Shown: positions 313 through 58,347 of the stretch, one piece after another
Position numbering within the stretch: the first letter of the stretch is position 1
Layout: every line of letters begins with the position of its first letter
Origin: Magallana gigas
Taxonomy: Eukaryota
NCBI RefSeq assembly: GCF_963853765.1
Contig: NC_088858.1
Location: 30,938,001 to 31,002,000, forward strand
DNA: 64,000 nt
Direction: 5' to 3'
Made by a program: the position numbers and the translations under genes
The notes under the pieces: generated by a model
Told to the model about the DNA's origin: nothing
Database searches by the model: none
What the model saw: only the letters and a program-made list of their open reading frames with translations

Positions 313-3300
313 CTATCCTTTTGGATACATAGTATCTACATATTCTGAAAACCAAAAATGGGAGTTAGCGAAAACATTCTGGAAATACTCAACCAAAAGC
401 AGTTATCAAGAAACAAGATTGCAACAAACCATATAGTTTAATATTTGTGTTTACGTTACAATGACTTTGATTTAAAAACATGAATGAATTTAACAGAATT
501 TTATGAACATATCAGTTGAAGGTATCATAAGTGATACTTTAATCATAATAAATATTTATGTGAAAATGTCAGTTCAGGGTACAATATATGGTCATTAATT
601 TAAATCAAAATAAATTTATTGGAATTACTAGTGTATGAAAAACCATCCGTTGATGTATTTTCTATGCACGCTGTTAGAAGTAGCGTAGATAATTACTTAC
701 AGTAACATTTTATACCAAAATGTAGAATTCCATGACATACTAAAAAAACCTTTTAGAATTTAACTCCAGTTACCGAACTATCTGACGATAGAATTGTAGC
801 TTCCTCATTTCAGGTNNNNNNNNNNNNNNNNNNNNNNNNNNNNNNNNNNNNNNNNNNNNNNNNNNNNNNNNNNNNNNNNNNNNNNNNNNNNNNNNNNNNN
901 NNNNNNNNNNNNNNNNNNNNNNNNNNNNNNNNNNNNNNNNNNNNNNNNNNNNNNNNNNNNNNNNNNNNNNNNNNNNNNNNNNNNNNNNNNNNNNNNNNNN
1001 NNNNNNNNNNNNNNNNNNNNNNTTGTTTTCTATAAGACTTTAAAATATCGCTTACCTTCGTAATCTATTTTTCCGTCCCCATTTTTATCTGCCTTTTCCA
1101 TCATTTCATCAACTTCCTTCTCTGTCAGTTTTTCTCCCATTTTTGTCAAAACTGATTGTAGCTCGGCTCTGGATATGAAACCATCCTTGTTCAGATCAAA
1201 CACTTGAAATGCTTTCTTTAATTCCATCTTCACCTCGTCCGGCTCTTTGTAAGACCGTTCCAGGAACGCCAGGAATTCATCAAAATCTATCATTCCATCT
1301 CCTGTATAGAGTATTTATGAATTTATCTATCTAAAATTAAATGCAATCATATTTTCCGTATTCTTTAAATTAAAAACTTTTTATAAACCTGTAACAACTC
1401 AACAATACAGCACAGCTAAATATTGAGGATTAAAAAAACCCGAACACTTGAATCCTTGATAACTTATAAAACAATTAAAAATAAATATAGGTAAGTTTAA
1501 AGTTGAAAACGCACCATTTTGGTCAATTTCGTTTATCATGTTTTGCACTTCTTTCATCGTTGGATTCAGACCAAGCATGCGCAATGCTGTACCCAGCTCT
1601 TGTGCACTTATTACCCCGTTTTTGTCCTTGTCGAATTCACGAAATACACTCTTAGCTTCAACGACCAAAGCTACAAAATACATGATTTGGAATCGAAGTG
1701 CAAATTAAAAAAAATTCATATAAACGTTATTACAATAAAGATGGTAACAGCGAAATTAAGAAAGAATAAGATAAGATACCTTTGGCATTTTTGGATGAAC
1801 AAATGTTTGACAAATCCATTGTCATACTTGATTCCTGGAAGTACAATAGCAATATGTATGATAAAAGTAAGTTTTAGATGTGTTCATATTTACAGATGAT
1901 ATTTTATGAGTATTAACGTACTGATTTCTTGAAAATATAATTCATTTCTTATATTATAGCATACTTGAGAATCATTTCTATATCATTTACTTTATCTAGA
2001 TTTCTGTGAGATCGTCTGAGGAAACCCAGGAATTCGTCAAACTTTATCAATCCATCTCCTTTAAAATGAATAAGAATTATCATTTTGAAAATGTTATCTA
2101 AAGATAAATTCGGTTCTTTTTGCCGGTAGTAAACCTTTTGAACAGTTGCAAATATTACCACAAAAGTCATTCGAAGTTTTGTTAGATGTGCATCATTGTT
2201 TGTATACTACTTTAATAATTTGACAAGGCTTTGCTTTTTTAAGCTGCAAACAAACTTAAATTTTGCAAGAAAAATTTGTTTGAGAGGTTTAATCATGAAC
2301 AAAAACATGTCATTACATGTAGTTATAATTGTTATCGTTCGGTAAATGAATAATCTCTCAACAAAACTATATATAATAGCGTAATACTATAACGAATTTC
2401 ATATAGCACATGAATTATTCCAACTATCCAGCAACATAAATGGCCATAACGCAAATGCATTATACATATGTATGTACACGTGCACTAGAATGATTATACT
2501 TTCTGACCTGCCAAATTAAAAAAAAAACTTCTGGGGTTTGAAAAACTACACGGTCAGGAAATATGAGGACTCCTAAACATAAATGTGCGTTATATGAATA
2601 TCCCTGTCTACTTTTTAGGCATATGGAACGCAAAATGAGGGAATATAATTACTTTGGATGTATGGAATTGCATTGTACAGTATTGAAGAAACAGCTCAAG
2701 ATAATTGACAACAAAATCTTTTTGGCAATAAAGTCACTATTGATCATATGATAATGAATGTGAAATTGATTTTATTGGTACATAGTGTATGTCGGCATTC
2801 ATATCCATTGGTGGATCCAGAGGGGGATTACGGGGGTTAGAACCCACCCCTTTCTCTGGGACAAATGAAATTTTTTTTTAAACTTAAAATTCTAACTGGA
2901 AGGCAATTTTTTTCCACTGCAATTTAAATACTATAATTATCCAACATAAATGCTTTAGAAATCGCTTACTAGTATTTAACAGATGTTCGTTGTCGTACAA
3001 CAGACGTAATTTATTCCTTAGAGACAACACCCTATCGATATTCTATTGAAGTAAAGTTATTAGTCAGGTTCCCGAGACTCCTCTGTTATTATTATTGGGG
3101 TCCCCAATACTAAAACAGAGGGTACTCGGGAACCTGACTATAAAGTAATCTTCTTCAGCACCTGGTGTTTATTTCTTTTAGTAAGCATGTGGAATTTTTT
3201 TTTAAAAATTACATAAAGCATGCAATATCGCTTAGGTATTTTCTTCTTCATTCCTAAAGAAAATCGATTGTACTTAATGAAACGCATGAAATGCATTTTA

Positions 3301-5926
3301 TTTTTCAAATGCTTAACTGAAATTCTGTGGCAAAAATATCTTAAGAAGGGTTAACTTGAGACTTATTGATTAAGACTACAAATTATCAAAATCCTTGCCA
3401 AAACCAAAATTTATATACCCACGGAAAATGTTAAAAAAGTCTAGGGGGTTCTTTACGAATAAAAGGTTAAGTTGGTATTGGACATCTCCATCTTATGACG
3501 TACTTCCTATGGAAATAATCAATAAAATCAAGTATAATTTTATCAAAGTTTTCTTTTTCAAAATTGCTACCTAACAGCGTAGTGCACTGAGTTTGAGTGT
3601 TAACTACGAATGTTAGTAATGAGTTCGAATCCCGTTGGGGCTTTTATGATTTTAACCTTTCCAGAAAATTTTAAAATATATTTTTTGGTCAAATATTGTA
3701 AAATTTGATCTTTTTTTAAACCGGTGAAAGTATTTGTCTATAAACTACTTTTATCCACATTGGTATCGACCCATACCACCTTAACTAGTGCTGAATTTTA
3801 CACGTTTTGATATTTATGGATTGGAACCCCCCCCCCCCTTTCCGATATTGCTGGATCCACCTCTGATATCTATATTTAAATGCACAAGAATCACTATTCT
3901 TTTAAGTTTGATCACAAAACTATAAGTATTTCAATGGAATAATCGGTAGTTTATATCATCGGATGTTAATGTAATGCTAAAGCACTAACGTATATGCAAT
4001 AAACAAGATAAATAAAATTCATCGCACAGTTTTGTTGATTTCCCAAATAGCAAGACATGAGTAAGCTTTACTTTTAGCAAGCGCATTGTATTTCCGATTT
4101 ATATTCTTACGCATAGGTAAAGAAAAGCGTAATTTGATTCATTATGTATGTAACTGTATGAATGTTCTACTTTCTGTGTTCAAGGCAAACGCATTTGAAT
4201 AACGTTTTAGTAATCTACATGTAATTAAAGACTTACATGAGGACGTCGTTGCATAGTAAATGTTATAGTGCAAGGCACAATGTGTGCGCAATTAGTAAAA
4301 TTTGCCGGAAGCCTTATATGGACACAGCTGTGTAAGACCGAAGCCGATTAAAAAATAGTATTTGCAATAAACGTTCCAGCATAGTATTCTTCCTTTTGAG
4401 TTAACCCTTTTAATTTCATTTCCAAACGCACCTTTTTTGTCAATTCCAATCATCATGGTTTGAACTTCCTCCCTCGTAGGACTCAGTCCAAGCAAACGCA
4501 GTGCTGTACCTAACTCCTGAACACTTATTTCTCCGTTTTTGTCTTGATCAATTTTATCAAAGGCACTTTTTGCTTCTATGATCAATGCTTCAAGAAACAA
4601 ATATTGTACAAAAATTAGCATTAGTCTGACTCAATATATCCTAAGACGAAATGGTGAAGTAAGAGCAGAAAATACCATTGGTTGATTGGGTTGAAACATA
4701 ATCTGACAGGGCCATCTTTGCTTTCGAATCCTAAAAGCACAATTGGTTTGTGTATGTTTTAGATTTATCATAACAAGCTGATTACACTTATTCAGGACGG
4801 TTAAATATCGACGACTTTACAAATTTATCGTTAATACGGTTTGAAGACTTTTTTGGCATTATAATAGTAAAAAACATTACTTTTTAATTTCAATTTGTAT
4901 TTTTTAAATAAAATGTTACTTCGCCTTTCTTCTTATAAGACCCTTTGAGAAATGCCAGAAATTCGTCATACTCTATCGTTCCATTTCCTTAAATAAATAC
5001 ATAAAAAAAATACTGTAGTATAAAAATCATATAACATGTGTGTATTGATAGTATTTAAAATTTCCACGTTGATTGTTATAATTGTTTATTCGTAATCTGC
5101 ACTACGTATAATTGGCGATTTTTCCCGAATTTAGCACAATGCCAATTTCATTACCATTTAGTATTAATGCTAAAGGAATGTTGGTCATATTAACTATTTG
5201 GTAAAAAAGTACTAGCCTTTGCATTTGTAAAAGAAATAAAGAATCTGAAAAAAAAAATTCGTGTTTAAAGATGCGTTTTATTGCCCAAAATGACGAAAAA
5301 ATGTTATCAGAGTTCTTATTTTGAGTCGTAAGAGCCGTTTTACGTTTTACTACCAGCTAGTTCAAGCTACCTGCGAGAGCAAAAATATTTGTGTGTTTTT
5401 ATTTATGAATAATATTCATTGCTAAAAAACATCGGAAGTCAAACGAGTACCCTGGCAATTGGATCATTTGCATGTTTTTCATTCATATGTTCATAAACTG
5501 ATAATAAATCCATTTATTGACATATATATATATATATCCTAAAGTATTGAAAGGGAAATGCGTACCTCAAAGTGTTACAAAATGACATGAAGATAATATT
5601 GACGAATTTATTCTACTTTTAAAACGCACCATTTTTGTCAATTTTCTTTATCACGTTTTGCAATTCCTTCATCGTTGGATTCAGACCAAGCATGCGCACT
5701 GCTGTACCCAACTCCTGGGCACTTATTTTTCCACTTTTATCTTTGTCAAATTCATCAAAAACATTCCTTGCTTCCAAATCCAAAGCTGCAAAAAAAAATG
5801 GATTATTTGGTATGTATCAAATAAAATAACAAAGCATCTTGTCTTTGGAATGGTAAAAGAAAACGTGAAAGAAGAAATACCGTTGGCTGATTGTGGTGAA
5901 AAAATGGCTGACAGATCCATCGCCAT
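313..5926 (-). CDS. Gene A2: 8-EF-hand calmodulin-like protein (345 aa), 10 coding exons
   Basis: Coding exons (minus): 5881-5926 (ATG, MAMDLSAIFSPQSAN), 5630-5785, 4920-4987, 4676-4730, 4432-4587, 1991-2058, 1780-1834, 1515-1670, 1056-1301, 313-344 (EYVDTMYPKG*). All junctions are GT-AG; total 1038 nt, in frame. Loops: [96 protein letters not shown]. An unseen exon in the N gap at 816-1022 cannot be excluded. Confidence 0.85.
816..1022. other. Assembly gap (N run) in the last intron of gene A2
   Basis: Run of N. Confidence 1.
3061..3140. mobile_element. 80-bp palindromic MITE with TA ends, nested in the 2806-3865 element
   Basis: TAGTCAGGTTCCCGAG...CTCGGGAACCTGACTA; outer 16 bp are a perfect inverted repeat; the stem is about 39 bp with a 1-nt centre. 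Confidence 0.8.
3577..3640 (+). repeat. Degenerate tRNA-like (SINE-head-like) segment
   Basis: A-box-like TAGTGCACTGAG and B-box GTTCGAATCC (3623-3632) at tRNA-like spacing; no intact cloverleaf. Confidence 0.35.
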
Positions 5927-6190
5927 TCTTGAATCCTGAAAGTGCAAGCAAGTAAATGTATCTTACATATCAACCGTAGCGTGGTGTTTACATATGTAGT
6001 AATTCTTATCTGCGTTGATTTAGTTTTGTCAAAAACGAAAGTTCATTTTTCAATTCGCCCCAAACATCATATAAACCCTAAGAGTTAAAATTTTCAGTTT
6101 AATTAACTCTTAATCAAAGATACATCATACATAAAATCCTTTAGTTTTACACATGCATGGAACTCGTAAATGTCGTAGTTTCATACTTAC

Positions 6191-6290
6191 CAGTACTACT
6201 GTGCACTCCGTATCAATTCCATGTCAATTTACATGAATCCCTTTAAGAACGGATAATTTCTGTCAATTTTTCCATGGTTCTATAAAACCA
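6191..6290 (-). promoter_or_regulatory. Putative non-coding first exon and core promoter of gene A2
   Basis: Strong donor CTG|GTAAGT at 6191/6190, giving a 255-nt intron to the acceptor at 5936. TATA-like TTTTATAGAA near 6285. There is an in-frame TGA and no in-frame ATG before the junction. The layout mirrors the 5'UTR donor of paralog A1 at 9780. Confidence 0.5.
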
Positions 6291-7882: not shown

Positions 7883-9618
7883 CTATTCGGTCGATTGACA
7901 CATCATGTTGACATATTCTGAAAGAAAAACAGTGAAATTATGGCACTTATAAAGTCATTTCAGTTCTGTCTGAAAACAATGGACTATAAATTCAGTTGTG
8001 TTAACATTCTAAATATTGGTTAAAGATTTTACTTATGAAAAAGTCAATCCACCTAAAAATAAATTATTAAATTTTCATTTTACCATTTTTCATTCTTTTT
8101 CACTGTACAACCAACTCTGAATATATGCTCGTATATTTAAAATCACATTTAACTCTAATGTTATTTTTATCCAGATTTTTAAAAATATTGTTGTCCGCTG
8201 CCCAAACCTATTTTATTGTTAACACCATATTTGATACGCTGACATTTTTTTATTGATTTAAATAAATGATCATTGCATTTTTTTTTTAAATGGAATTCAT
8301 GATCTTTTTATTGGATAAGGGTAGAAAGTCAAGCAGACATAAATATTTTTTACCTTCATAATCAATTCTCCCGTCTCCGTTGCTGTCGGCTACTCGGACC
8401 ATTTCATCAAATTCTTTCTCAGAGAGTTTCTCACCCATTTTTGTCAGCACTGCCTTAAGTTCCTCTCGAGAAATGAAACCGTCTTTATTTGCATCAAATA
8501 CCTTGAATGCCTCTGTGAGATTGCACCTTATTTCATCGGGATCTTTATAAGTGTGTTTTACATATCGTAGAAATTCGTCAAAATCTAATTTTCGGTTTCC
8601 TGCAAAAATAATTAAATTAAATAATGAAAATAACAAAATTTTGTCTATAACTTTTGTACCCTAGATTTATATAGTGCAATATTCTTCATAGGAGACAAAC
8701 ATCATGATTCATGCATATTTAGAGATTACACCTTTCATTTCATTACATTCATTATCACAATCACTGGAATAAACCTAATAGAAAAATTATACTAATTTTT
8801 ATATTCCATACTCTGTCAAATGCTTATCAGATCATACCTACCTCCATTAAATAATTAAATATTGGCTTTACTTAGGTTTTTAAACTTATTATATTTCCGG
8901 CTGATATGAAAGTTTTTAATACAAAGAAATATAGTTCCATTACCATCACTGTCAACTTCGCCGATCATCGATTGAATTTCTTTGAGGGAGGGGTTTAAGC
9001 CTACTCTCCTGAGGGCTGTCGCCAGCTCTGACTCATCAATAAAACCGTTCCCGTCTCTGTCCAGATCACGAAACACTTCCTCAGCTTCTAATAAAGCATA
9101 GAAAAGAAACCATTCAACGGATCTACAAATGAATATTATTTTCAGTGTAATCTTTTTTTTTTATTTTTTTATAAAAAGACGATTGTTCAACGCTGTTTTG
9201 TGAAAAATAGGATCATCAATTCTTTAAAAGAATACACATACAGTGAGAAAGGTATTCTCAAGAGAACATTTGTAAGTTACAACTTTTAGAACCCACAAAA
9301 CCTTTTTTTTAAACGAAAAATGAAAATGGTCGAAATATTTTTCCAGTGAATTATAGATAGAAAACTATTCTGCCCAAATGCCCTTATGTTTTTCTCTAAC
9401 GGGGACCAAATTTGCAATTTCATTTTAAGTCTTCAGTGTGTACATGTATATGCCATGCTGAAAATTAGCATCGTTATTATTTGACATCAGGGACGACCCA
9501 ATGGAGTAGTAATATTGCGACAAATATACTAAAAGTCTTATAGCTATAGGTCGAGAGGAAAATCAAATCCATCGGAAAAAAATCCCTTACCTTGTTGTTT
9601 TTCAATGTTCAAACTCAT
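7883..9618 (-). CDS. Gene A1: calmodulin-like protein (150 aa, 4 EF-hands)
   Basis: Exons 9591-9618 (MSLNIEKQQ), 8944-9087, 8354-8599, 7883-7917 (EYVNMMCQSTE*); 453 nt in frame, GT-AG junctions. Loops DRDGNGFIDESE, DSDGNRKLDFDE, DANKDGFISREE, DSNGDGRIDYEE. The ATG exon has its own acceptor at 9626; an upstream non-coding exon donor GTAAGT is at 9779. Confidence 0.88.
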
Positions 9619-9883
9619 TATATTCCTAAGGACACCGCATATACCGACTTTTAACTTTGAAAATCTCTTCCAGCGAATTCAGAGCCTGCTGAAATATTTA
9701 TTTCAATGTAAAGGATGTATCCAAAACAAATGTTGTTGAGCCAAAAATAGACATATCCTCAATCATTACGAGTACTTACCACTGTATTGTTTGCACAATG
9801 TATTGAACCTGTCTGTTTTTTATCATGCTGGTCTTATATTATCGGATGGCTTCATGTTCCGCAAACAAACGAATTTTATTGTG

Positions 9884-9893
9884 GTGACGTCAC
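9884..9893. promoter_or_regulatory. Full CRE palindrome GTGACGTCAC upstream of gene A1
   Basis: TGACGTCA at 9885-9892, about 100 nt upstream of the 5'UTR exon donor at 9780. Motif match only. Confidence 0.4.
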
Positions 9894-10980: not shown

Positions 10981-13772
10981 TCACCTCTCGGACATCATTC
11001 TGCAGAACTCTGGAATTATAAAAAAAAAGAACTCATTTAAAATTAGTCCTAATAACGATAGCTGACTTACTATAGCTTAGACAAGTTCATGTTGGTCTTT
11101 TTTTAACAGTTACACAATGAAAATTTACTAGCATTCCTATTTCATCCAGGCACGTAGCATCGATTTTGGAAGTGTGTGTGTGGGGTGGGGGGGGGGACGA
11201 CTCGTCCGAAAATTCTTGACGAAAATAAAAAAGAGGAAAATTTACAAAATTATAAAATATGAAGGGAAGGGGGTATATCGTTACTTCAGTTTCAATGTTG
11301 AATTCCTCATTTTCATTTCAATTTATTACATACTCCAAAATAAGTAGAGGGCCATGTGCATGTAAATTATGGAAAAAATGTATATAAATTTAAGAAAAAA
11401 AATGCCTGATGCAAAAGTGGGGTGGAGGGGAGGGGGGGGGGGGTCCTTGTGATGTGTCAAGGAAATGTAGAAATTATATTTAATTTCTAATGTTATACCT
11501 GCACATAGCCTTCACAAGCGATTGTGACTCGTGGTATTTTCGTGTCAAAAGTTTTGCTTGAAATTTGACATGTAAAAGGTAATAACATTAATTTGCCGTA
11601 AAGTATATTATGCTCTTTAACCCACGGTCGTAGTGCACCTCTTCTGGAGTTGAGGCAAAATGTACATGTTTTGCAGTATAAAACTATGATTATCGTTTCG
11701 AACAAGAAACTGGAGAGTAGTTCTAGAAAAAAGCAATATAATAACCTTGAGAAAAAAAACATTTTTGCAATGCTAACTAATTTATATCCGTATGAAACAT
11801 TGCACTTTTCAAGTTTACTTAATCATGTTATGAATTATCCGTACATTAAAAACGTTTTAAAATATTTTGAGGGAATACATAGTGAAAAAGTGAGATTCAC
11901 ATCAAAAGTGAGCTCGTCTAACTTTATGGCTCAGGGGCCAAGTTTTTAACTCTGACATAAAAAAAAAAGAATTTTTTTTTTAATTGTTCATTTTCCTCTA
12001 ATGCGCTACGGCCGTGAAACCAATTACATGTATAGATACATGTATAAATAGCAACACGAATTTCGCGTGAAGATCAGGACGTGATTTTAATGCCCACTTC
12101 ACGTGAACTTCGTGTGTGCATATTATGAAGATGTTTTACTATGCTAAATTTGAATCTGATACAAGTTCTTGAAATAAAGCATGTAGCATCTAGTACCTTC
12201 ATAGTCGATTTTTCCATCCCCGTCTGTGTCTATTGCCTTCATTAGTTCGTCTGCTTCCTCGGGTCGTATCTTCTGCCCCGTTTCAGTTAAAATGTTCCTT
12301 AACTCGGTCACTGTAATGCATCCATTATTGTCTTTATCAAACAGTTTGAACGCTTCACGAATTTCATCTTCTGTATTCGTCTTTTCCAATTTCTTGGCCA
12401 TCATTAAAACGAATTCTTCAAAGTCGATGGAACCATTCCCTATATATGTTGCATAAATAAAGTGAAAATTTTTTCATTTTTGTGATGCATATATCTATAT
12501 ACATGAACTTTTTTAGCTGGATGTATCATTTAAAATTCAAAACCAAGATGCAGAAAACAACGGCTAATCATAAGAATTTAAAATTAAATATTTACATCTA
12601 CCGAGTACGATTCCCATTATTTTTTAAGGAAATTTATTGTTAATAAATATCTCTATAGAAACGTACAGGACTGAAATCTACACGCCCCGTTTATCGACTG
12701 GTCGAAACCTACAGCGACTGAAACTGACAGGATTAAAATCTACAGCAACCAAAGAAGAAAAATCACGGACTGCACGAAATACATGTATTTTGATAATTTC
12801 AGACTCAATTCCCATAGGAGACGATTGGGCTGTTTCTTTTAGCTATAACTTACTGATGCACGTATAAATTAACAGTAATTTAGTTACTAGTTATTCAACT
12901 TACTTTTTACAATCAATTACTAATTTGTTAAAAAAATGTAAATATACCCAATAAAATGCTGAATTTAATTATCACGTGTGTTGTGGTTTTTTTCTGCAAT
13001 GTCGCCACCTTCATGCTCCGCATGGATCACCAAAGAAAGCATTTTATTGTTTGAATATTTACATATTTCAATGTCTTTGTCTGTGATAACACTATAAATC
13101 GATATTGTAACTCATACTCCATATGCATCAATTACTTTTTTATTTGTAGGTTCCGCACCATTGCTGAAAATTATTGAAACAAAAAATGTTTTCTTTGCTG
13201 CAAATAATTAAATACTACACAGGCACGTAGCATCGTTTTTGAAAGTGTGTGTGTGTGGGGGGGAGGGGGGGGGGGGGCAGAATAATCCAAAAAAAGGGAA
13301 AAGGTTACTTTCCAAAATCTTGACAATCCTAATCCGTGAGGGGGAGGCAGGTATACTTTTCATTTCAATATCACTGTTTATTTCCTTAATTTCAATTCAA
13401 TTTTACATGGTCACAGAATAAATTAAAGAAAAATCTTTGCTGCGCAAAAAGGTGGGGTGGGGGCAACCCCCCCCCCCCCTCCGATGCTACGTGCCTGCTA
13501 CATAAATGAATTCTTCCGATAAAAAAGACGGACGTCATCTCTTACCGTCTTCGTCTACACCCTTGAGCATGATTTCTAGTTCAGCATCGGAGGGGTTCTG
13601 TCCCAATGACCTCATCACCATCGCCAGCTCATTGGTGGATATCGTCCCGTCCCCATCCTTGTCGAACAGGTTAAAAGTCTCTTTAAAATCTACGGGGAAA
13701 ATAGTAGATCAAATAAAAAAATAAGGTAGCTTTTACATTTTGACATCTTCCTCTCCCTGTTTGTCTGTTCGT

Positions 13773-13849
<77 letters not shown>

Positions 13850-14430
13850 CGTGTATACATATAATTTAAGAGACTTTACTAAGTCTTTTAAGTCTTGCAT
13901 GAAGCATGAATGAAGTAAACTGAAATAAACCTTTCCCTTTAAAAGGCTGAAAAGAAGGACAACTTCAAACAATACAAAGCCATACAAAGTTGCATCATTA
14001 GTTCATAGTATCATTCGATCGTATGTGAACCTGATGGCATGCAAAGGTCACCATTAGGTCAAAATCTATTTTACCTTGAGTCATTGAAGATCATTTCAAC
14101 AAATGTTATAAGGTTTCTGTCCGCAAAAGTGGTGCATGTAAATTTATACTCTCATCCCTATATAATTATATATTTTTATTATCGGGGTTTTTTTGTCTAT
14201 CATTTTACTATTGCAATAAACAACATATACCTACAACAAGTTCATTTCAGAAGAAAGTCTTAATTTAAAAATTCTTACCTTTCTTAATTTCTGCCGATAA
14301 TTGATCTACCTAGAAATACAAACGATGTAGAAACGAAGTGAATATCAATGATTCTGAGAAAACACTGCATATAGATAAACGCATTTTAAACAACATGCAA
14401 TCAAATTAGTTCTCAACAGATGCTTACCAT
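10981..14430 (-). CDS. Gene B: calmodulin-like protein (149 aa)
   Basis: Exons 14428-14430 (ATG|gtaagc), 14279-14309 ([10 protein letters not shown]), 13546-13689, 12197-12439, 10981-11009 (EFCRMMSER*); 450 nt. Loops [48 protein letters not shown]. Typical calmodulin exon sizes 3/31/144. Confidence 0.92.
11147..11450. mobile_element. Truncated copy of the CAGGCACGTAGCATCG MITE family
   Basis: The same left TIR and G-rich subterminal layout as the 13220 copy; right TIR not found, so the end coordinate is approximate. Confidence 0.6.
12651..12785 (+). repeat. Dispersed repeat fragment (CTCTATAGAAAC..ACAGGACTGAA family), copy 1
   Basis: Shares CTCTATAGAAAC-ACAGGACTGAA-T-ACACG and CTGCACGAAATA with 59372-59450. 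Confidence 0.55.
12949..13052. mobile_element. Internally deleted copy of the palindromic AAACAATAAAATGCTTTCTTTGG MITE
   Basis: CAATAAAATGCT...TTTCTGCAATGTCGC...CACCAAAGAAAGCATTTTATTGTTT matches the arms of 60262-60426. Confidence 0.6.
13220..13497. mobile_element. MITE (278 bp), perfect 16-bp TIR, 5-bp TSD
   Basis: CAGGCACGTAGCATCG ... CGATGCTACGTGCCTG, flanked by CTACA on both sides (13215-13219, 13498-13502). In an intron of gene B, about 48 nt past a donor. Confidence 0.88.
13776..13844. repeat. (TC)n microsatellite
   Basis: Direct read; intron 2 of gene B. Confidence 0.98.

Positions 14431-17822: not shown

Positions 17823-17825
<3 letters not shown>

Positions 17826-17853
<28 letters not shown>
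17826..17853. repeat. (AG)n microsatellite
   Basis: Direct read. Confidence 0.97.
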
Positions 17854-17854
<1 letters not shown>

Positions 17855-18012: not shown

Positions 18013-18015
<3 letters not shown>

Positions 18016-18595: not shown

Positions 18596-19498
18596 ATGCA
18601 GTTACAGTCAAATAGAGTTTTTTGTTTTCTATTTTACATCATTCTCCAGTTTAAAAATTCTGCAGCGAGTGACCTTAGATGCGAGGACTTGTTAATGGGA
18701 CAATTCTATTGTAAAGATCCAGTGATAGACACGGAAACTCAAGTAAGGTGATTTTTGAAAGTGTGTATGTAATTGGGTTATAATAAGTTGTAACTTTGTA
18801 AATCCTTATTTTCATGTGATGATGAAATCTAAAATGAAAAAATAAAACACCTTGTATCTCAANNNNNNNNNNNNNNNNNNNNNNNNNNNNNNNNNNNNNN
18901 NNNNNNNNNNNNNNNNNNNNNNNNNNNNNNNNNNNNNNNNNNNNNNNNNNNNNNNNNNNNNNNNNNNNNNNNNNNNNNNNNNNNNNNNNNNNNNNNNNNN
19001 NNNNNNNNNNNNATATACTGTTACTATCATCAATATAAATTTTATTTTTGGCATTTTCAGGCAGAAATTAACTGTGATCCAGAGAAAAAGACCACACCAA
19101 CTGAATGTGTTGTCGCAGAAGGCATAACTTGCATTCCCCAAAATTCAAACACACTTTACACATTCAATGGAACAGAAGTTGGCTTCTACAAGGAAGCTCC
19201 TTGCAGATGGACGAATGGTTACAAGTTCGAGACAGCCTTACTCCTTTCAGTCTTTCTTGGGATGTTTGGGGTTGACAGATTCTACCTCGGGTATCCCGCA
19301 ATAGGACTTTTAAAGTTTTCTACTCTGGGTTTCTTTTTTCTTGGACAATTGATCGACATCCTCCTGATAGCCCTTCAGGTAGTGAAACCTTCGGATGGAT
19401 CCGAATATATCATGAACTATTTCGGAGTTGGTCTGATTCATATTCAGGCAAATAATGACACATATATTAAGCCTGACGAGTCGTGGAATATGTCATGA
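18596..19498 (+). CDS. TM2D1: TM2 domain-containing protein 1 (beta-amyloid-binding protein-like), 194 aa, 2 exons
   Basis: Exon 18596-18742 (MQLQSNRVFCFLFYIILQFKNSAASDLRCEDLLMGQFYCKDPVIDTETQ|gtaagg) and exon 19061-19498 (ttttcag|AEINC...LSVFLGMFGVDRFYLGYPAIGLLKFSTLGFFFLGQLIDILLIALQVVKPSDGSEYI...). Signal-peptide-like N-terminus, CEDL..GQ..CKDP motif and the TM2 DRFYLG motif all match TM2D1. The intron contains an N gap. Confidence 0.9.
18863..19012. other. Assembly gap (150 N) in the TM2D1 intron
   Basis: Run of N. Confidence 1.
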
Positions 19499-22061: not shown

Positions 22062-22062
<1 letters not shown>

Positions 22063-40100: not shown

Positions 40101-40192
40101 TATGCATACCTAAACATGTTTAAGTATAATTACATGTGTAAAATATTTAAAAATGAACACCGACAACTGCAATAGAAATTTATACTTACCAT
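37168..40192 (-). CDS. Gene G: calmodulin-like protein with degenerate C-lobe (149 aa)
   Basis: Exons 40190-40192, 39672-39702 ([10 protein letters not shown]), 38101-38244, 37511-37753, 37168-37196 (DFVKHITSK*); 450 nt. Loops [48 protein letters not shown]. Confidence 0.92.
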
Positions 40193-45377: not shown

Positions 45378-48300
45378 TCACGTCGTCGCCACCATCATCT
45401 TGACGAAATCTGCCATGAAATATAAAGAAATGAAATTCAGCATATTTTCACTTTTCCTATCTAATTCTTATTCAATTCTAATTCTTATCATTCATTTCAA
45501 CTGAGAAGTGTTTGGCATCCGATTCAATAAATACAAAGCAAATCCTATTTTGAGCTCAATATCATTTCCTATAGTATCAACAAAACCCGGATCGTTTTCT
45601 GCAAGTAGAGTTACCAATGGAGCCAAGTACACGTAACTACACTAACATGTAAACATTAAACCTTCTTGATTCCCAATAATTTCAAGACAAACTACAGTCA
45701 CTATTTTAAACCATATTTTATCAGTTAAAGGGACTTAGACACCATTTGACTTAAAATTTTCAAATTTTATTTTTCCATTTTCAATGTTTATAATGATAAA
45801 TAAAGAAATTTATAATGCTTTGTCAAAATTTGAAAGTCAAATATCAAGATATAAGCAAGATACAGAGTTCATAATTCTTTGTTTTGTAAACAAAGCTGGA
45901 ATATTGTCATTCTTACATATGTGTTGTTTTGGTGTAAGTTTTAATCAAATGTACCTTTCTTTTGTTGATAATAGTATATATGAAGATATTGAATTAGTTT
46001 AAATTGTTTTTAAATGTCATTTTGTCTAAGAAATGGCAATTCTCTACATTACATATTTTTGTAAAAAAAATATAGCTAAAGACTCGAGCTTTGTTTACAT
46101 AACAATCAATTCTTACCTCTGTATCTAGATTGTAACTTGACATTAACATTCAATATTTTAGTCAATCATTTAAAATGCACCAGTAAACCATTTTAAACAT
46201 AAAAAATTGAAATAAAATTTTTGATCTCAAATCGTGTCGAAGTCCCTTTAATCATTATAGTAATTTTCTATTCATTCGTGTTAAAAATTTATTTTAATTT
46301 ATTTAGAAAATATCTGTTGAAATATACATGTACCTGTTACGTTAACCATGCCGTCTTCGTCCGTATCCGCCTTCGATATTAGCTCCTCTGCTTCCTCTTC
46401 CGTTATACTGTTGCCCAGAGCTGCCATCGCTTCTCTCAGATCGTTGGCCGTGATCTTGCCACAGCCGTCCATATCAAACACACTGAACACCTCGGCCAAT
46501 TCATCCTCTGTCATAATCTCTGTTTGGTCACCCCTCCTTGCCATGATTTCCATGAAGTCCATGTAGTGGATGAATCCATTGGCTACAAAAGAAAGACAGT
46601 CAGTTGTGAATCCATTTACCACCAATGGAAGACAGTTGCAATTATAAGTTTAAAATCAGATGATAAATATGTTGGCTACGAAAGAATGAAGACAGTTGCA
46701 ACTAATATTAACATATAGTGAAGAATTTTGTGGCTATCAAAAAATCAGTTGTAATTTGAGGTTTTAAACCTCCTTCTTGTGGTCTGAAGCATTTAACAAT
46801 AAGTGTTTTGTTTAAACAATGTCTTTGTATTTATTTTTCGAGTTGGTACTTATATATCAATCAAACAAACAAAAAATAGATTGCGAAAAAACAATAATTT
46901 ATCTATTGTGTTACTGCTTGTTAAGATATATTCCTAAAAACTTGAAACATTGTCTTGCTTATGAAAACACAAGATCCCATCTTATCAGGTGGTCAGAACT
47001 TGGCATATATTTATAGAGCATATGATGTCTTTTAAAAAGACAAAAACACTATTTAAAAAAAAATATTCTTAAAGATAAAATTTTTTAGTTGATAAACATT
47101 CTGAGAGAGTTTAATCTGTTCTTTATAAAAGTTAGATCATAATTATATCATTGATATACATATGTACTTAAATCTAATCACATTCAGATAAGTAGATTAA
47201 ACTATAAAACCTGTACGTAAAGATTTACATGTATATAACTTGAAACAACTAGTACTTTTACTGTGTATTGCACACAGATGCATGTGTAAGAAATTCTGGA
47301 AATGTTTTCAAAATTCAACATTAATTTTCTCTACTAGCAATTTGAAATTAAGTAATCCGAGAAACAATACTTTTATCAGAAGTTAACAAAACTTGAAATC
47401 CTACAAACATATAGATCAATACTATAGCTACTAAAGACTAACCACTTCTGTCGTATTCACGGATCATGGCCTTGACATCATCTTGCGTGACCTCTTGACC
47501 CAGGGCCCTCATGACTTTCTCAAGGTTCTCCACTGATATCGTTCCATTCTTGTCCTTGTCGAATCGCCTGAACACATCTTGGTACACTGGAATGGTGATA
47601 ATATATTGAATATATGAACAAGTTTTTTTCTTTATGATTCCATGCAATCTAATTAAAACTAGACTTGTATAACCGCTACTTCACGATATGCCAAACGAAC
47701 ACTAGTAGAGTTTCGTAAAGGTGCGGATTTACAAGTCTTATTTTAATTAGATTGGTATGATTCGTAATGGAAACGTTGTATCCTTCATGATACAGTAAAT
47801 ATATTCAATATCATCATTCATAAACCCGCGGTGATGTTAATTTTTCAACACACCTCGTTAGAAAAGCGGTCTTATACTTCTCTTTACAAATCATGGAAGA
47901 TTCTAAGTTTACTTATTTGCTTCATAGGGAAAAAGGCTATAATTGCTTTCATCATTTGCATTGTTAGTCGTTTCTTAATAAGTGGAGTAATGATATAATT
48001 ATGTAACAACATAATATTAAAGTGTATGTTGGCATTTACTTACATTTAATTTGTTCGTCCGTAATTACAGGGTCCTATAAATAGAGAGCAACTGCATTAC
48101 AGTTTGCAAAACAATCAGAACAGTTAATTTTTCATCTTAAAAGTGTTGACAGATAAAAAAAACCCACAGGACTTCTCAATAATGCACGTTGAATGGCCTA
48201 TTCGTGCCAATGATAACTACCTTTTTAACGGGTTTCTTTTTCTTTTTCCTAACAACCTTTTTGGGTGGCATCTCTTATACTAATCGCCCTTTGCAATGAG

Positions 48301-48591
48301 AACTAAAATCCGGTGCACTTAAATCTTTTTGAATACAATAATTCACTCAAGAACGGAAACCCGAAAATCTGAATGTTTACCGAGTTTTTTCTCTGAGCTA
48401 GACCATTGGGTGTATGGGCACGGATTGATTTCTATAGACCCCTGGTAAAGTCCTGGCGTTCGTGCTGCCTTTCTAATCTACTTTTATCATTTTGACCCCC
48501 CTGATAATCTGAACTAATCATAAAGACTTGTAATAAATCTAAATATGAAAGAACCACACACAATCTGAAGTAAACAAATATGGCTTACCAT
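45378..48591 (-). CDS. Gene I: divergent calmodulin-like protein lacking Glu12 in all four loops (152 aa)
   Basis: Exons 48589-48591, 48044-48074 (DPVITDEQIK), 47443-47586, 46334-46582, 45378-45409 (DFVKMMVATT*); 459 nt. Loops DKDKNGTISVEN, DRSANGFIHYMD, DMDGCGKITAND, DTDEDGMVNVTD. Confidence 0.9.
45729..46247. mobile_element. TTAA-flanked MITE (Kolobok-like), in the last intron of gene I
   Basis: TTAA|AGGGACTTAGACAC ... GTGTCGAAGTCCCT|TTAA; TTAA at 45725-45728 and 46248-46251. Confidence 0.8.
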
Positions 48592-49800: not shown

Positions 49801-50338
49801 TAGCTCCCGGTCTGAGAAAATTCGGATGGATAACCTTGGAGCTACAGTGCCACACATTGAAAAAATTCGTGTATTTATAGCGCACAAAAACGTGTGCTGG
49901 TTTTGGACTGATTAACCTTATCTATGCGCAAATTCTGTGAAAACAATTAGTACCATTAAATTTTTCATGCAATTTATTACTATTGTGGTCTCTTAACTTG
50001 TCTTGGACTTTCTCCGGAACACGCTACCGACCTCGGAAAATCAAGTATGTTATATTTTACATCGAGATCAAGAGTCGCCATTTTTACATGTAAACAAACT
50101 GCACCACTTCACTTTACGGGGCCGATTATTTTCAGGGGCAAAGTAAAGGGACGATATCAGTAATAAATTTCATGAAGAATTTAATAGTTCTAATTGTTTT
50201 CACAGAATTTGTGCATAAATAAGGTTAATCATTCTAAAAGTAGCGCACTTTTTTCTGCGCTATAAATACACGATTTTTTCAATGGGTGGCACTGTAGATC
50301 CGAGGTCGTCCCTCCGAATTTTTTCAGACTGGGAGCTA
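49801..50338. mobile_element. MITE (538 bp) with long, about 180-bp TIRs
   Basis: TAGCTCCCGGTCTGAGAAAATTCGGA...ACAGTGCCAC..ATTGAAAAAA..CGTGTATTTATAGCGCA is mirrored at the right end (...TCAGACTGGGAGCTA); the inversion extends to about 49980 and 50160. Confidence 0.85.
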
Positions 50339-51659: not shown

Positions 51660-51665
51660 CTAGCC

Positions 51666-51703
<38 letters not shown>

Positions 51704-53600
51704 AAAAAAAAATCCCAAAACACCGGTTTTATAACATATTTTGAAAAATAGTTATATATATTCCAATAGCAGTAAAACAAATGTCTTATATGAGAATAAA
51801 ATGCTTTAATAGACAAGACAAATCTACAAGTATATATTACATATATGTACTTAAACACATGCATCGAAATCATGCGAAAATCTAGACGAAGAGGGTACCG
51901 AAGCTGTCCTCCCCTTTAGACGGGTTTTTTAAATTACTAGCATCACATTACAAGAAACAGCCATCATACCCCCACCCCTAGAAAACTCGTGCCCCTTGAG
52001 TAAGTTCCTCAGACTGTATATATACATGCAGTAAAGCTCTTAAGTTACTCATTTGCTCTCTGTTTTGCGGGGGGGGGGGGGTATTGTATCTAAGGGCAAG
52101 TGTGAACACCTCCATCCCACCTTTGAAAATATCCTGCATATGGACCACAGACCAAAACAGTTTTATATCAACAAAATTATCTTTATTGAGGACCAAACCA
52201 CATGAACAAGAGACACAAATATAATCAAAACTTGTTTATAGAGAATATATAGATTTTTTTTTATAATTTTGTTTTCATCATTTCCTGCTTTGATAAGTTT
52301 GTAAAAGGGAAAGAATCTGATAAAAAATGATAAACAAAACAAAAACCCCTCACAGGAAATAATTTTACAGAATCTAACGACCGAATCACACGGAAAACCT
52401 TCACATAAAAAAAGAAGAAGAAAAAAAACATGACTACTGCTATTGGAGCGAATCAACACGCAAAAATTAATTTACAAAATGTACGATAATGAGCTAATGC
52501 ATTTTGTGCATTGCATAAATCAATGGGGAATTAGCGCCGCGATCACTCAACGACCGACAAACGGATAGCAGTATTTAGCGTCATATCCATCGAACAGCTT
52601 TGAAAATAATTGTTTTTGTGATAAGTTTACTGTCAAGGTCGAAGAATGAATGCATTTCGTTAATTAGTCAGACCTTGATATCCATAACTATTTGCATAAA
52701 AACAATTGTTTTAAACACGATTAATTATCACTGAGTTTAAAAAAAGGGGGGTGGGGGGTAAAACAAACTGCCATTTTGAAGATTAGTATCACAATGCCAA
52801 ATGAATAATTTCTGTGTCATCTCAACATTGATTTGTATGGAAATCGGCAAATGTTGGAATTTGATATATGCACTCAATAACAAAGCAATTTTTATCAATA
52901 TTTAAAGTGAAGCATTGTTTAATATTAATGAGGTGCCATTGTTGGCCATATAACGAGTTTGCTTAATATGGAAATGTTAAATCAATTTTTAACATCTCAA
53001 TAACGAGATTCAATGCCAATGTCATATCCAAATACTAATACAGGTACGTGTCCAGCATGGAGGGGATAAATATTGATATCAAATTCATGTCCATTGGATG
53101 GAACAAACTATAAAAATGTACATAAATAACATTTTCTGGAATAATTTACTCCTTTTACTAACGCCATCCCTTTCACTTTCTAGAACATAAAATGCAAATT
53201 GTGAAGAGAAAAATATTAACAACAACATTTGTTACAAAAAAAATCATCGATAATATTATAGCCAAATTTCAGCTACTACATACAGGGAAATATTCGCCCC
53301 TGTTTTATTTTTCGCCCCTTTCGCTCGCGTTCTCAGCAGGCGAATTTAAGACTAGACGTATTCCAATGTCTCATTTTATCCCTCTTTAATTAAACACAAC
53401 TTTTCTGGGCGAATTTGAGACGGACCGAAGAAACTGTTTGCAAGTGTACAGGAGGGCAAAAATAACACTTTTACAATATCAGTACAGAATCACGATAACA
53501 GGGCACATATTAAACTTCCTGGCAGTGACTCGAAATAAACATCGACAATTTTTTTTTTAAAATTTCATCTCTACCTTCGTAGTTGACCTGTCCGTCCCCG

Positions 53601-53632
<32 letters not shown>

Positions 53633-56513
53633 TTCCTCGTCTGTGAGACGTTCCCCGAGACTTTTCATCACGTGACGTAGCTCGGAAGCGCTGATGAACC
53701 CATTGCCGTCCTTGTCGAACACCTTGAAGGCTTCCTTAAGTTCCTCTGTCGTGTCAGTATCTCGCATTTTCCGCGCCATCATTTGAAGGAACTCGTCGAA
53801 ATCGATCGTACCACTTTCTGAAATAAAACAGCGTACAACATTATACGCTATATTTTGTACCACTAACAATTTTTGGCGCAATGAATTGATCAAGGTCAGA
53901 CTCCTTATTCAGTTTTGAAAATAATTACTGAAAATTTTAACCGATAATGCTCTAAGATACATTTCAACTTTAAAAATAGCATTATAAGCTTTTAAAACAC
54001 CATCCACCAGACCAATTATTTTTTCAAGAAATAATTCTTCATATATCAAATCCTATGGAAAGCAATACATTTGTTTTGAATAATCATTATTTTATAAGTT
54101 GCTTGATCTGTTTGTTAATTAATATTTAGACTTTTAATGTACACGATATTAAGATTTCTTCCTTCTTCGTTCACTTGTTATTTTGTTCATCATGAATAAA
54201 GTTCATCCGGAGTGATGATCTACCCGAAATCGAAAGTTAAACAAACCCATGGAACAGCAGTAAACCACGCACCAAAAGTTTTTTTTAAGGGATGTGTCAT
54301 CTATTTCCTCTTTTTAAAGGTATTTTACAGGTTGTCATGATAACACAAAAGCATAGCTATTATGTGTTTTAGACCATATCCGATTCTATTGTTGGTGATA
54401 TTTTTTTTTATACGAAGAACACGAAACCCAACGATATTTTGAGCGTATTTGGTTTTATATAAAAAGAGAACGTGCGGAAAAAATTCCGAAAATTCATCCA
54501 ATACAGCTATTGAACGATTTTGTTAAGTAATGCCGCGTCCACCATAATGTTTTATCAACCCAACCTTAGGTTAAAAAAAAGGAACCCGATTCTTCATTGT
54601 TCCAGATTCTACACACGAAAATTGATTTTTGTCATTTATCCAATCAATATAGAGTTCACATTACAAAGGTGCAGATGTGACGGCACTATAGCCTTGTCAG
54701 AAACACTGTAGAAGGCAAAAAATCGTGATCTGAGACTCAAGGTCGGCCATTATATCGAGCCAGGCGGTGCGTTGTTGACATACCATCATAGTCTACTTCG
54801 TTGATCATGTCCTGCAGTTCGCCCTCAGTGGGATTCTGGCCCAGACTGCGCATGACCGTTCCCAACTCCATTGTCGTTATACTTCCGTCACCATCTTTGT
54901 CAAAAAGGTTGAAGGCCTCTCGGAACTCTAAAACAGGCAAATAATTTTTTTTAATGAATAAAAGAATTGATTCCTCTTTTTGACGTTTTATCTTGTGTTT
55001 ATTTTTTTATATATCAATATCTCAAAAGGAAATGGATATGAAAAGATTTTATTTCATTTAAAGCTACTGTATAAAATAAAATACATTTACATTTTATTTT
55101 TATGATCACCTTCTGCGAATTTTCTATACAGCTGTTGCCATAGTAATAAAGCATACTATCAAAAATTCAGATGCACATACATGACGTGCAGAAAACTAAA
55201 ATTTAGTCTCGTGTTTTACCTGCAACTTGTTCGTCTGAAAGTTTGATTTGCTCTCTCTGTGCCTGCAAAAATACACAATTTCAATAAGACTTCTTACGTA
55301 TCTTTTATAATTCATATTTTAGAATAGCCTAGAGTAAGAAATATGCTGCATGGTAGCACTTCCTTAGCAGTAACTATATGTATAGACATGTACTGTAACA
55401 TCTGGCACAATGGTCAAACCAGCAGACGGGCCAAAACAAACAAAATTCGTGTTCCACGCGTTAGTATATAACCCTTTAGTATATACTTTAAAAAAGACCA
55501 TCTATTCTTATCAGGAATTTTCTTATTGCAGTATAATTTTTGACAAAATAATTACCGTGTTTTTATAATCTTTTTGCGTTTTACCAAATAAAACTTTTCT
55601 AATTGATTTTAAAAAAATGTATAGCCATGGAAGAAATTTTATCGGTTACTTGTTGATTGAGCAAAAAATATATATAATAAAACATTGAATCGGATTTTTA
55701 AAACAAAAATATAGCCAACATGCGTAATCAAAATTAAAGAGCTTTAAGCATGACTATCAAAGTTTAAATTGTATTTGTTTGTTTTAGTTTGATAATCCAC
55801 TACATGTAAATGGGGGGGGGGGGGGCATAAACATGATACCATTTTAAGAGTGTAGTTCCTATTCCAAACAAAAACAGGATAAGTGGTAATGCAGTTTATT
55901 AACATCAACATTTTATTGCAACATTTGTTTTCAATCCTTGTCTCTCAAACCACCCATCCCCCCTTTGAAGTATCTTGGCTAAAATTTTCCTATAGTTTTT
56001 TCTTGGGGATGCTGATGAGTCCAGCACAAGAATCTTGGCAGTGCAATCGAAAATGATTGAAGTTCCGGAAGATAACATTTGATTACATAATTTTTTTTCG
56101 ATCTGGGACCGAACACTTATTTCATCTTGGCCGACGATGGAAGGTTTAGTTTTTATAAAAGGGTTAATAAGTCATAAAAAGACCGAGAGATGTGAACGTC
56201 GATAACTACAAGCGCCGGCACATGATAGGGCCAGGATGGTGTGGCAAAGAATTGACCTTAACCATATATAGTGTATGTAGTCTTTTGGGAGCGTGTTGGG
56301 GCATATTTCCAATTAATGTCCTCCGGCTGCGTTAAATTCAATTATTGGCGCCTCTGATGCGTGAAAGTATGTAAGCATAATTTGATATAACAATAACATA
56401 TTATTGATTACAAAAGAACACGAGAAAGCCCAATATGTATATGTCTGGGTCCATTGCCATGCCGGTTATTATAGTGAAATATACCTTTGGTTTCAGAGCA
56501 TCTAATATTAATG

Positions 56514-56555
<42 letters not shown>

Positions 56556-56575
56556 CCAGAATTCCCTACAGGATA

Positions 56576-56609
<34 letters not shown>

Positions 56610-56771
56610 CAATGAATGGTAAACATAGATTAATATGCCCGGTTTATTGAAAGCTCCGCGCTCGATCGATCACGTGACCGTTCTGTTCGGCCTGTTAATG
56701 AAAGTTTATTTTTTGCGCGAAGTACCAATCAGACACACTTGAGTACGGGCTAGCGTGACAATGGAGAAACA

Positions 56772-56802
<31 letters not shown>

Positions 56803-56810
56803 AATAAACT

Positions 56811-56856
<46 letters not shown>

Positions 56857-56915
56857 GAGTTGTTATCCTATTTCAGACTGAAAAGTTTATTGATCATCTC
56901 TCTCTCTCTCCCTCT

Positions 56916-56968
<53 letters not shown>

Positions 56969-58347
56969 ATTAGCCCAAAAGTATTCGTTTCGAATGTTTC
57001 TAGTAAATGAATTATGGCTCGAATGTTATATCTCCTCTTTATCTTAAATGTAAGATGTGAAACTTCTCAAAAATTCCAAATTTAAACGTGGGAGTTTCTA
57101 GGGGGTTCGAATATTTGCAAAATCTAGTTTTGGTGGTAATGCAATAGTTTCGAATTCAATAGTTTCTTGGAAGAAACAAAAATAAGCACATAAAAAATAT
57201 TGATTTTATACACCCAATGTGTTCTGATTAATGGCACCCATGTTATTAAAAAACAAAGATTTATCTCATGAATCAAATAAGGAACAAATATTTTCAAGTT
57301 AATTTTTGTTTCCCCATATCATGTTTTGTCGAAGTTTCTTCCGTTAATATATTCTATTGTTTTTCCTTGTTACCAACTAACTGATCGGCCTATCTAACCT
57401 CAATGCTATTCATCACTTTACATTTTATTTTTTGTGCTACTTAATGCAGAACATAGTTAAACTTTATTTCTTATCAAGGAAATATTAAGCTATCACTTGG
57501 CCTAGAATCACTTCATTACTGTTATATTAACGTTATTGATATGGTTTTCAAACGAGTCATTTATCGGGAATTTTTTTCTGCGCAATAAGTAAGCTCTTTT
57601 GAAAATTAAAATTAAACCTTGCCAGATGGATTAATATCGATTTTTAAACACTTTTTTCTAAATAACATTACCTTGCAGAGAAAAGACGATATAATGAGAC
57701 AAAAGACGAAGGTTTTTGGTTTTTTTTTAAAAATACTTTTTTGTCATCAATAAGGTAAAATAATGTGAAAAGAAAATACATCCATCAGAAAAGTATAAAG
57801 AAAATATGTCAACGTTAACGACTGTTACAACCAGCTGTCTCGGGCACCCTGGTGATAAAGTGATTAGAGGCTCGTTTGTTATTTGTGCCTGGATATAACA
57901 CCGAATCGATTCTGCATTAAGATCTTATAAAAAGCAAAATGTTACAGTTGCAGCAGTTTTTTTTGTTCAGCAAACAAATTCGTAACCTAGAGTCCTAACA
58001 CCACACGTTCTCCGAATCTCGTTCCTTTTTTTTTTCTTCACCGAACAATGGGTTACTTACATGATAAACACAGAACAAACAGTCTTCACGCCTTGGTTTT
58101 GACAATAAGATTGTCAGATCAATATCAACCTTGGACTGCCTCGCCCAGCGCCCCATCCCCCCCCCCCCCCCAAAACACACACACACACACTTTCCCTTTA
58201 CTTAAAAACATTTAAATAAATATTGGCAAAAATTCTTAGTACTTATTTTGCCGGGTTTTTTTTAGCAGTCAAAAAAGACAGTAGTAGCAAAATACTACTG
58301 TATTGATTAAAAATTACTAAGTTTAAATAAATAAAAAATCTTACCAT
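51660..58347 (-). CDS. Gene J: calmodulin-like protein closest to canonical calmodulin (157 aa)
   Basis: Exons 58345-58347 (ATG|gtaaga), 55220-55262 ([14 protein letters not shown]), 54784-54927, 53575-53817, 51660-51700 ([13 protein letters not shown]); 474 nt. Loops [48 protein letters not shown]. About 80% identical to animal calmodulin by manual comparison, so it is not calmodulin itself. Confidence 0.92.
53274..53484. mobile_element. Degenerate MITE with internal GGGCGAA/TTCGCCCC repeats
   Basis: TAC..ATACAGGGAAATATTCGCCCC start, repeated TTCGCCCC and GGCGAATTT motifs, CAGTA end; in the last intron of gene J. Confidence 0.55.
56897..56964. repeat. Interrupted (TC)n microsatellite
   Basis: Direct read; intron 1 of gene J. 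Confidence 0.97.

Follow-up and report, generated by a model that had tools for sequence, protein, structure and literature searches.

A tandem array of ten calmodulin-like genes in the oyster Magallana gigas, some of them with degenerate EF-hand loops

Introduction

Calmodulin, the closest described relative of the genes treated here, has 149 amino acids (aa), four canonical EF-hand loops and a sequence that hardly varies among animals (identity well above 90%). The present work concerns ten calmodulin-like genes (A2, A1, B, D, E, F, G, H, I and J, from left to right) found in a stretch of 64,000 nucleotides (nt) of the Magallana gigas genome (assembly GCF_963853765.1, contig NC_088858.1, positions 30,938,001 to 31,002,000), hereafter called the window. 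The array resembles canonical metazoan calmodulin in its four EF hands in two lobes and in its exon plan, and calmodulin is also its best solved homolog. A preliminary description of this DNA had regarded the genes as a set of paralogs with different lobes switched on or off.

Families of calmodulin-derived paralogs of about 150 aa, with a variable number of functional EF hands, are known as plant calmodulin-like (CML) and vertebrate CALML proteins, and the plant CML families expanded partly through tandem duplication (PMC9439640). The oyster array differs from them in keeping the calmodulin introns in eight genes and in comprising ten co-oriented genes in one 58-kb bivalve array. Selective inactivation of EF loops or of whole lobes is well known in calmodulin-like families and light chains (PMC4914028); hence, such losses are not new in kind and are typical of calmodulin-like families. 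The author of the preliminary description knew of no account of this lobe-partitioning pattern; literature searches found no description of this particular array, but lobe inactivation itself is familiar.

Two further systems are relevant to the members with degenerate loops. Myosin light chains and the Dictyostelium protein MlcD have the calmodulin fold with EF hands partly or wholly without Ca2+ binding, and light chains with degenerate EF hands stay conserved through binding to IQ motifs (PMC4914028). In the laboratory mutants CaM12, CaM34 and CaM1234, Ca2+ binding is eliminated in one lobe or at all sites of an otherwise preserved fold, and the half-mutants revealed that the lobes of calmodulin signal separately (PMC4035741). 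Comparable states are predicted from the loops in the array. Nevertheless, those proteins carry point mutations that leave the target surfaces of calmodulin unaltered, whereas the array members are natural paralogs, 40–60% diverged from J, in which Asp or Asn at loop position 12 may weaken binding and not abolish it. Given this divergence, their target sets probably differ. Among bivalves, the calmodulin-like protein CaLP of Pinctada fucata has an extra hydrophilic C-terminal tail and is reported to be tied to shell calcium metabolism (cited in PMC5040781).

Results

Ten Co-oriented Genes in the Window

A PROSITE-type EF-hand scan of all six frames of the window detected canonical loops on the minus strand only. 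Combined with tblastn searches using the window's own exons, which revealed no EF-hand exon in the window beyond ten loci, the scan defined a set of exactly ten calmodulin-like genes, which without exception lie on the minus strand and together span about 58 kb. Each gene model was built by hand from splice signals (coordinates are given on the plus strand). All ten coding sequences assembled in frame, with open frames and GT-AG introns throughout. The ten co-oriented paralogs free of frameshifts and premature stops that had been proposed for this DNA were therefore recovered.

Nine of the predicted proteins measure 149–168 aa and A2 reaches 345 aa. All ten are acidic, a hydrophobic N-terminus was found in none of them (0/10), and an alignment of the whole set displayed four EF-hand loops in each protein and eight in A2. 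The Pfam matches were confined to EF-hand_7, EF-hand_1 and EF-hand_6, and no match to Rfam was obtained anywhere in the window. The sequence is rich in A and T (32% GC) and contains two runs of N, at 816-1022 and 18863-19012. The first falls within the last intron of A2 (see below); the second is intergenic, in the 7.6 kb that separate exon 1 of B (14430) from the last exon of D (22062), and tblastn with the window exons detected no EF-hand exon within several kb of it.

The interpretation favored here, to which we assign a probability of about 0.8, is that the array is an old tandem calmodulin-like family in which each copy has been kept by purifying selection and particular Ca2+ sites were lost long ago.

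A Common Exon Plan

Eight genes, B, D, E, F, G, H, I and J, were built on a common calmodulin-type exon plan. Exon 1 stops directly after the initiation codon (phase 0, ATG/GT, the slash marking the junction) and is followed by a phase-1 micro-exon of 28–43 nt, the counterpart of the LTEEQI segment of calmodulin. The N exon measures 144 nt, or 135 nt in E, and runs as far as the first base of codon 4 of the EF2 loop, the Gly codon of EF2 being split by a phase-1 intron. The C exon, of about 240 nt, ends in phase 1, one base into the codon for position 12 of EF4, and a short last exon completes the gene. The minus strand contained nine copies of the motif ATGGTRAG and the plus strand a single one; eight of the nine minus-strand copies lay just upstream of exon 2 in the genes B to J. 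A search for first exons ending in phase 1 (ATG N/GT) had been fruitless, the real pattern being the phase-0 junction followed by the micro-exon.

The intron positions and phases common to the eight genes are those of the vertebrate calmodulin (CALM) genes, indicating that the copies arose by duplication at the DNA level. The first coding exon of A1 and A2 is unlike this plan. An ancient tandem cluster would thus have been formed by repeated DNA-level duplication of a calmodulin-type gene, A1 and A2 being a sub-family with a different 5' end in which A2 would have triplicated a three-exon N-lobe module internally.

Genes With Degenerate Loops

Four genes, F, G, H and I, carry degenerate lobes. 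Gene F (33026-35646; 149 aa; exons 35646-35644, 35189-35162, 34708-34565, 33768-33671, 33499-33352 and 33054-33026) has a degenerate C-lobe, with an EF3 loop beginning DDEKRG and an EF4 loop beginning GIGKNG, and its whole model was confirmed by the spliced transcripts P0173 and P0174. F alone contains an extra phase-0 intron (33670-33500) that interrupts the C exon after the E-helix and before the EF3 loop. This intron is also present in the gene of a relative, as judged by exon mapping of transcript L011, and is missing in the sister gene G; it is a candidate for an intron gain after the F/G duplication.

In G (37168-40192; 149 aa; exons 40192-40190, 39702-39672, 38244-38101, 37753-37511 and 37196-37168), the C-lobe is likewise degenerate (EF3 DETKSG, EF4 GLGGNG, first residues only). 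Nevertheless, EF3 is near-canonical in a distant ortholog, so the C-lobe-off state assigned to G in the preliminary description, which matches the loops of the window gene, is certain only for EF4.

Gene H (40970-43602; 151 aa; exons 43602-43600, 43480-43438, 43018-42875, 42327-42091 and 40998-40970) has the EF1 loop DVKGTGKVSINQ, an EF2 loop two residues short and a canonical EF3. Its EF4 is also non-canonical, reading DLDCKGKVDFHD (DLDCKG at its start, with Asp at position 12). The N-lobe-off label given to H previously is thus correct for the dead EF1 and EF2, but incomplete with respect to EF4.

In gene I (45378-48271; 168 aa; exons 48271-48221, 48074-48044, 47586-47443, 46582-46334 and 45409-45378), position 12 of the four loops is occupied by N, D, D and D, without any Glu12. 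The loss of every Glu12 in I and the degenerate C-lobe of F had both been noted before and were reproduced in the alignment. Exon 48271-48221 encodes a 17-residue Lys-rich N-terminus (MPPKK...PVKK) and was the first coding exon in all of the transcripts found. The start formerly placed at ATG/GT 48591 was therefore discarded. An ancestral-type ATG/GT exon end (48589-48591) persists 320 nt upstream of the start of I; it was not used in the transcripts found and could be an alternative first exon. The basic N-terminal stretch resembles a nuclear-targeting or membrane-binding signal. The protein P0006 is an ortholog of I (85% identity), for which no contig was found on look-up.

Age of the Duplications and Selection on the Copies

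Protein identity between paralogs ranged from 23 to 60%. The proportion of synonymous differences (pS) was saturated, at 0.67–0.97, and that of nonsynonymous differences (pN) was 0.25–0.40. A self-comparison with exons masked detected no collinear intron similarity between paralogs, the shared non-coding sequence being limited to dispersed or inverted repeats. Those at 59899-60631, 12670-13058, 45724-46251, 49801-50338 and 3057-3143 are short, 77–90% identical and have palindromic arms; they are dispersed and inverted, and are located within introns of A2, B and I as well as in the intergenic DNA to the right of J; that at 59899-60631 matches intronic DNA of B and I. Their appearance is that of miniature inverted-repeat elements. 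In the tree, the adjacent genes F and G, and A1 and A2, were recovered as sister pairs; the order of the older duplications was not settled, 9 of 16 inner branches having less than 80% support.

Orthologous sequences were compared for A2, F, G, H and I, and each of these five genes is under purifying selection. The ratio of nonsynonymous to synonymous rates (dN/dS) was 0.02 for G against the genomic contig L007 of a distant oyster (pS 0.70, pN 0.043), in which the splice sites are kept, and 0.03 for H against the genomic contig L010, also from a distant oyster (pS 0.74, pN 0.084). The synonymous sites of the L010 species are saturated relative to the window. Against transcripts, dN/dS was 0.018 for F (L011, dS 0.77), 0.085 for I (L001, dS 0.21; position-12 states kept) and 0.23 for A2 (L014, dS 0.49). 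The degenerate loops were retained in the orthologs. Contig L010 also holds exon 1 of G (ATG/GT), about 760 nt past the stop codon of H. Hence, the adjacency of H and G is older than the split from that species.

The earlier claim that these duplications are old and were retained, and that the introns lack obvious similarity, is upheld by the saturated pS, by the masked self-comparison, by dN/dS values of 0.02–0.23 in the five genes, by the conserved degenerate loops and by the synteny of H and G.

Furthermore, 6 of the 11 residue changes between G and L007 fell in the two degenerate loops (Fisher p = 0.004), and both canonical N-lobe loops were identical. The faster change of the degenerate loops fits a loss of ligand function within a protein that is still constrained. 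The same observation also favors a different interpretation, in which F, G, H and I are light-chain-like subunits seated on the IQ motifs of myosins, channels or other scaffolds and largely independent of Ca2+, the canonical members are ordinary sensors and the array is a mere site of expansion. Degenerate EF hands within a conserved overall sequence are a hallmark of myosin light chains and of Dictyostelium MlcD (PMC4914028), and the very low dN/dS (0.02–0.09) despite dead loops, together with the Lys-rich extension of I, agrees with such a role. However, searches for solved relatives, made with gene I and with the C exon of J, returned only calmodulins among the best 60 matches of I (P0001), with E values down to 1e-37. 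Gene I is the best light-chain candidate by virtue of its Lys-rich N-terminus and missing Glu12, and the similarity of the array, as seen in I, is highest to calmodulin, unlike that of light chains. In addition, the two canonical N-lobe loops of F and G are perfectly conserved, which makes it probable that these proteins continue to sense Ca2+. A light-chain role for all four proteins is possible, if somewhat unlikely.

Transcription and the Preservation of the Copies

Spliced RNA was found for A2 (in three studies), for F (P0173 and P0174) and for I, whose 168-aa product P0001 was encoded on 19 transcript-like contigs. For G and H, the matches found were of the unspliced genomic type only, with no spliced product among them.

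These results bear on the possibility that several of the ten genes are silent or decaying copies, intact only in appearance. This is suggested by the missing spliced product of G and H, by the span of the transcript look-ups (five of the ten genes) and by gene E, which has the longest branch in the tree and for which a metagenome scan found no ortholog, its matches there being generic calmodulins of 29–67% identity. Stop codons would make up about 7% of random codons at the base composition of the window, by our estimate. Ten multi-exon frames with all splice sites intact at saturated pS are not expected under neutrality, and G and H themselves differ from their orthologs by a pN of only 0.04–0.08 at a pS of 0.70–0.74. 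None of the ten genes has lost its introns or its open frame. Silent copies are consequently regarded as highly improbable.

Several points nevertheless weigh against the reading of an old and selectively preserved family that has lost particular Ca2+ sites. The ortholog comparison and the transcript look-ups both cover A2, F, G, H and I, that is, five of the ten genes, and two of these, G and H, yielded the unspliced matches just described. Exon 1 of A1, B, D, E, G, H and J is predicted from sequence signals. Moreover, loop chemistry is an imperfect predictor of Ca2+ binding: loops with Asp in position 12 or Arg in position 6 may retain it, and the scallop essential light chain binds Ca2+ via a non-canonical loop (PMC4914028).

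Genes A2 and A1

Gene A2 (313-5926) encodes 345 aa with eight EF hands, arranged as an N-lobe module, a second N-lobe module and a full four-hand unit. Its coding exons are 5926-5881, 5785-5630, 4987-4920, 4730-4676, 4587-4432, 2058-1991, 1834-1780, 1670-1515, 1301-1056 and 344-313, and a 5' untranslated exon lies beyond 5936. RNA contigs and poly-A reads were compared with positions 200-6000 of the window, and a GT..AG joint was obtained for every junction in RNA contigs of three studies, some of them with poly-A reads. The joint 1056->344, which spans the N run 816-1022, was present in one X7 contig and one X21 poly-A read and agrees with the exon phases; the gap is therefore intronic and both of its flanks belong to one transcript. 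The short exons of A2 had at one stage been taken for truncated relics with a phase clash (frameshift), until the RNA joints revealed two 55-nt exons, 4730-4676 and 1834-1780, that restore the frame. The transcript thus contains three N-lobe modules and one C-lobe, as expected from the lobe-multiplied form attributed to A2 beforehand.

The EF2 loop of the middle module, DKKGDGLIKFDE, is weakened by Lys at positions 3 and 9. The internal modules are younger than the gene-to-gene duplications (dS 0.65–1.1). Transcript L014 of a related species has the same modules but is without exon 4587-4432; this middle N-lobe exon was present in the oyster RNA contigs, and its absence from L014 represents skipping or exon loss there. 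Within the 2.4-kb intron of A2, each of the four runs displayed very high RNA depth on both strands of the segment 3498-3885, where loose ends and joints of irregular type were numerous. Rather than a part of A2, this segment seems to be a dispersed repeat or transposon with transcription from many loci.

Multi-lobe proteins formed by internal duplication of EF hands are known elsewhere, one example being sea urchin LpS1 with its eight EF hands. A search of a representative database with the C exon of A2 returned mostly long multi-repeat EF-hand proteins, including some with 6–16 calmodulin-like repeats, P0025 and P0070 being the only useful matches. Like these proteins, A2 multiplies EF-hand pairs in one polypeptide; in contrast to their whole-protein repeats, only the three-exon N-lobe module was copied in A2, twice, resulting in 2+2+4 hands.

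Gene A1 (7883-9618; 150 aa) consists of exons 9618-9591 (predicted), 9087-8944, 8599-8354 and 7917-7883. Its EF2 loop, DSDGNRKLDFDE, has Arg at position 6 (G6R), and the other loops are canonical. In the tree, A1 grouped with the C-terminal unit of A2 and a 160-aa protein of another species.

Canonical and Near-Canonical Genes

The loop states reported previously for the remaining genes and for A1 (B, E and J intact, EF2 of A1 with G6R, EF3 of D weakened) were all found again in the alignment. Gene B (10981-14430; 149 aa; exons 14430-14428, 14309-14279, 13689-13546, 12439-12197 and 11009-10981) has four canonical loops. In gene D (22062-25033; 152 aa; exons 25033-25031, 23733-23706, 23568-23425, 22847-22605 and 22102-22062), EF3 is weakened by Glu at position 3 and Lys at position 5, the other loops being canonical.

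Gene E (26442-31269; 152 aa; exons 31269-31267, 27784-27754, 27632-27498, 27279-27043 and 26494-26442) also has four canonical loops, followed by an acidic C-terminal tail of 11 residues. Its N exon (27498-27632) is 9 nt, or three codons, shorter at the 5' end than those of the seven other genes of the common plan. The assignment of exon 1 is uncertain, the presumed exon being 3.5 kb upstream, far more distant than in the neighboring genes.

Gene J (51660-58347; about 157 aa; exons 58347-58345, 55262-55220, 54927-54784, 53817-53575 and 51700-51660) has four canonical loops and a short basic C-terminal tail; the acceptor of exon 55262-55220 could be 6 or 12 nt further in. In the first intron of J, a (GT)n repeat and then a long run of G occupy positions 58150-58200, shortly after exon 1. 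The tails of E and J, which are short and hydrophilic, are set beside that of Pinctada CaLP by description only.

J was the copy most like calmodulin, its C exon differing from calmodulin at 16 of the 80 residues compared (residues 61-140; 80% identity, E value 1e-53), and the other nine proteins were at most 59% identical to J. Judged by their sequences, none of the ten is calmodulin proper.

Discussion

In the old, selectively preserved family that we consider the most plausible account of this locus, each copy would have been retained as a distinct small EF-hand protein of the cytosol. Certain loops, or whole lobes, of some copies would have lost their Ca2+ ligands at an early date, with the protein itself still under constraint. 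We infer Ca2+-binding competence from loop chemistry, and the functional roles likewise. The fully canonical members would be ordinary four-site sensors with targets of their own. The degenerate members are likely to be single-lobe Ca2+ sensors, or Ca2+-insensitive adaptors and light-chain-like subunits that bind their targets constitutively, an analogy drawn from light chains and other calmodulin-like proteins whose EF hands are degenerate (PMC4914028) and from the separate lobe signaling of the half-mutants (PMC4035741).

The preliminary description had gone further and proposed one integrated, complementary toolkit. According to this proposal, lobe-specific inactivation would split calmodulin signaling among copies that compete or cooperate on common targets and decode Ca2+ under heavy flux, and the members would be natural counterparts of CaM12, CaM34 and CaM1234. 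The N-lobe-dead H, the C-lobe-degenerate F and G and the all-Glu12-lost I do stand beside fully canonical forms, and these loop states are conserved under strong purifying selection. The lobes of calmodulin signal separately, and Ca2+-blind calmodulin is dominant negative on pre-associated targets (PMC4035741); among sequenced molluscs, the oyster genome reportedly has the highest counts of EF-hand domains (PMC5040781). However, no shared non-coding sequence was found except for the dispersed repeats, and identities of 23–60% make different targets more likely than common ones. The same losses arise independently in many calmodulin-like families, so with a sample of ten the complementarity may be no more than an impression, and the partition between lobes is blurred by the weakened EF4 of H and the weakened EF2 in the middle module of A2. 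Hence, an integrated toolkit is considered unlikely, and the tie to shell formation or osmotic stress that had been suggested along with it gained no support from the present results.

A very unlikely, more specific form of this idea is that the array is an evolved split of the two-lobe signaling of calmodulin into individually regulated genes, with the degenerate members competing with calmodulin or with each other at pre-association sites and setting local versus global Ca2+ responses. In such a split, F and G may be N-lobe-only sensors, H may be essentially EF3-only, I may be of low affinity or lean toward Mg2+, and A2 may act as a triple-N-lobe protein.

At present, the array is an old, well-preserved tandem family whose gene models have been verified. 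It is of use in annotation and in the study of how EF hands are lost in evolution; it shows no new mechanism. If the degenerate members were expressed in distinct tissues and bound calmodulin targets, they would be natural, selection-tested counterparts of the half-dead calmodulin mutants, providing lobe-specific Ca2+ signaling with such counterparts in an animal with very large Ca2+ traffic.

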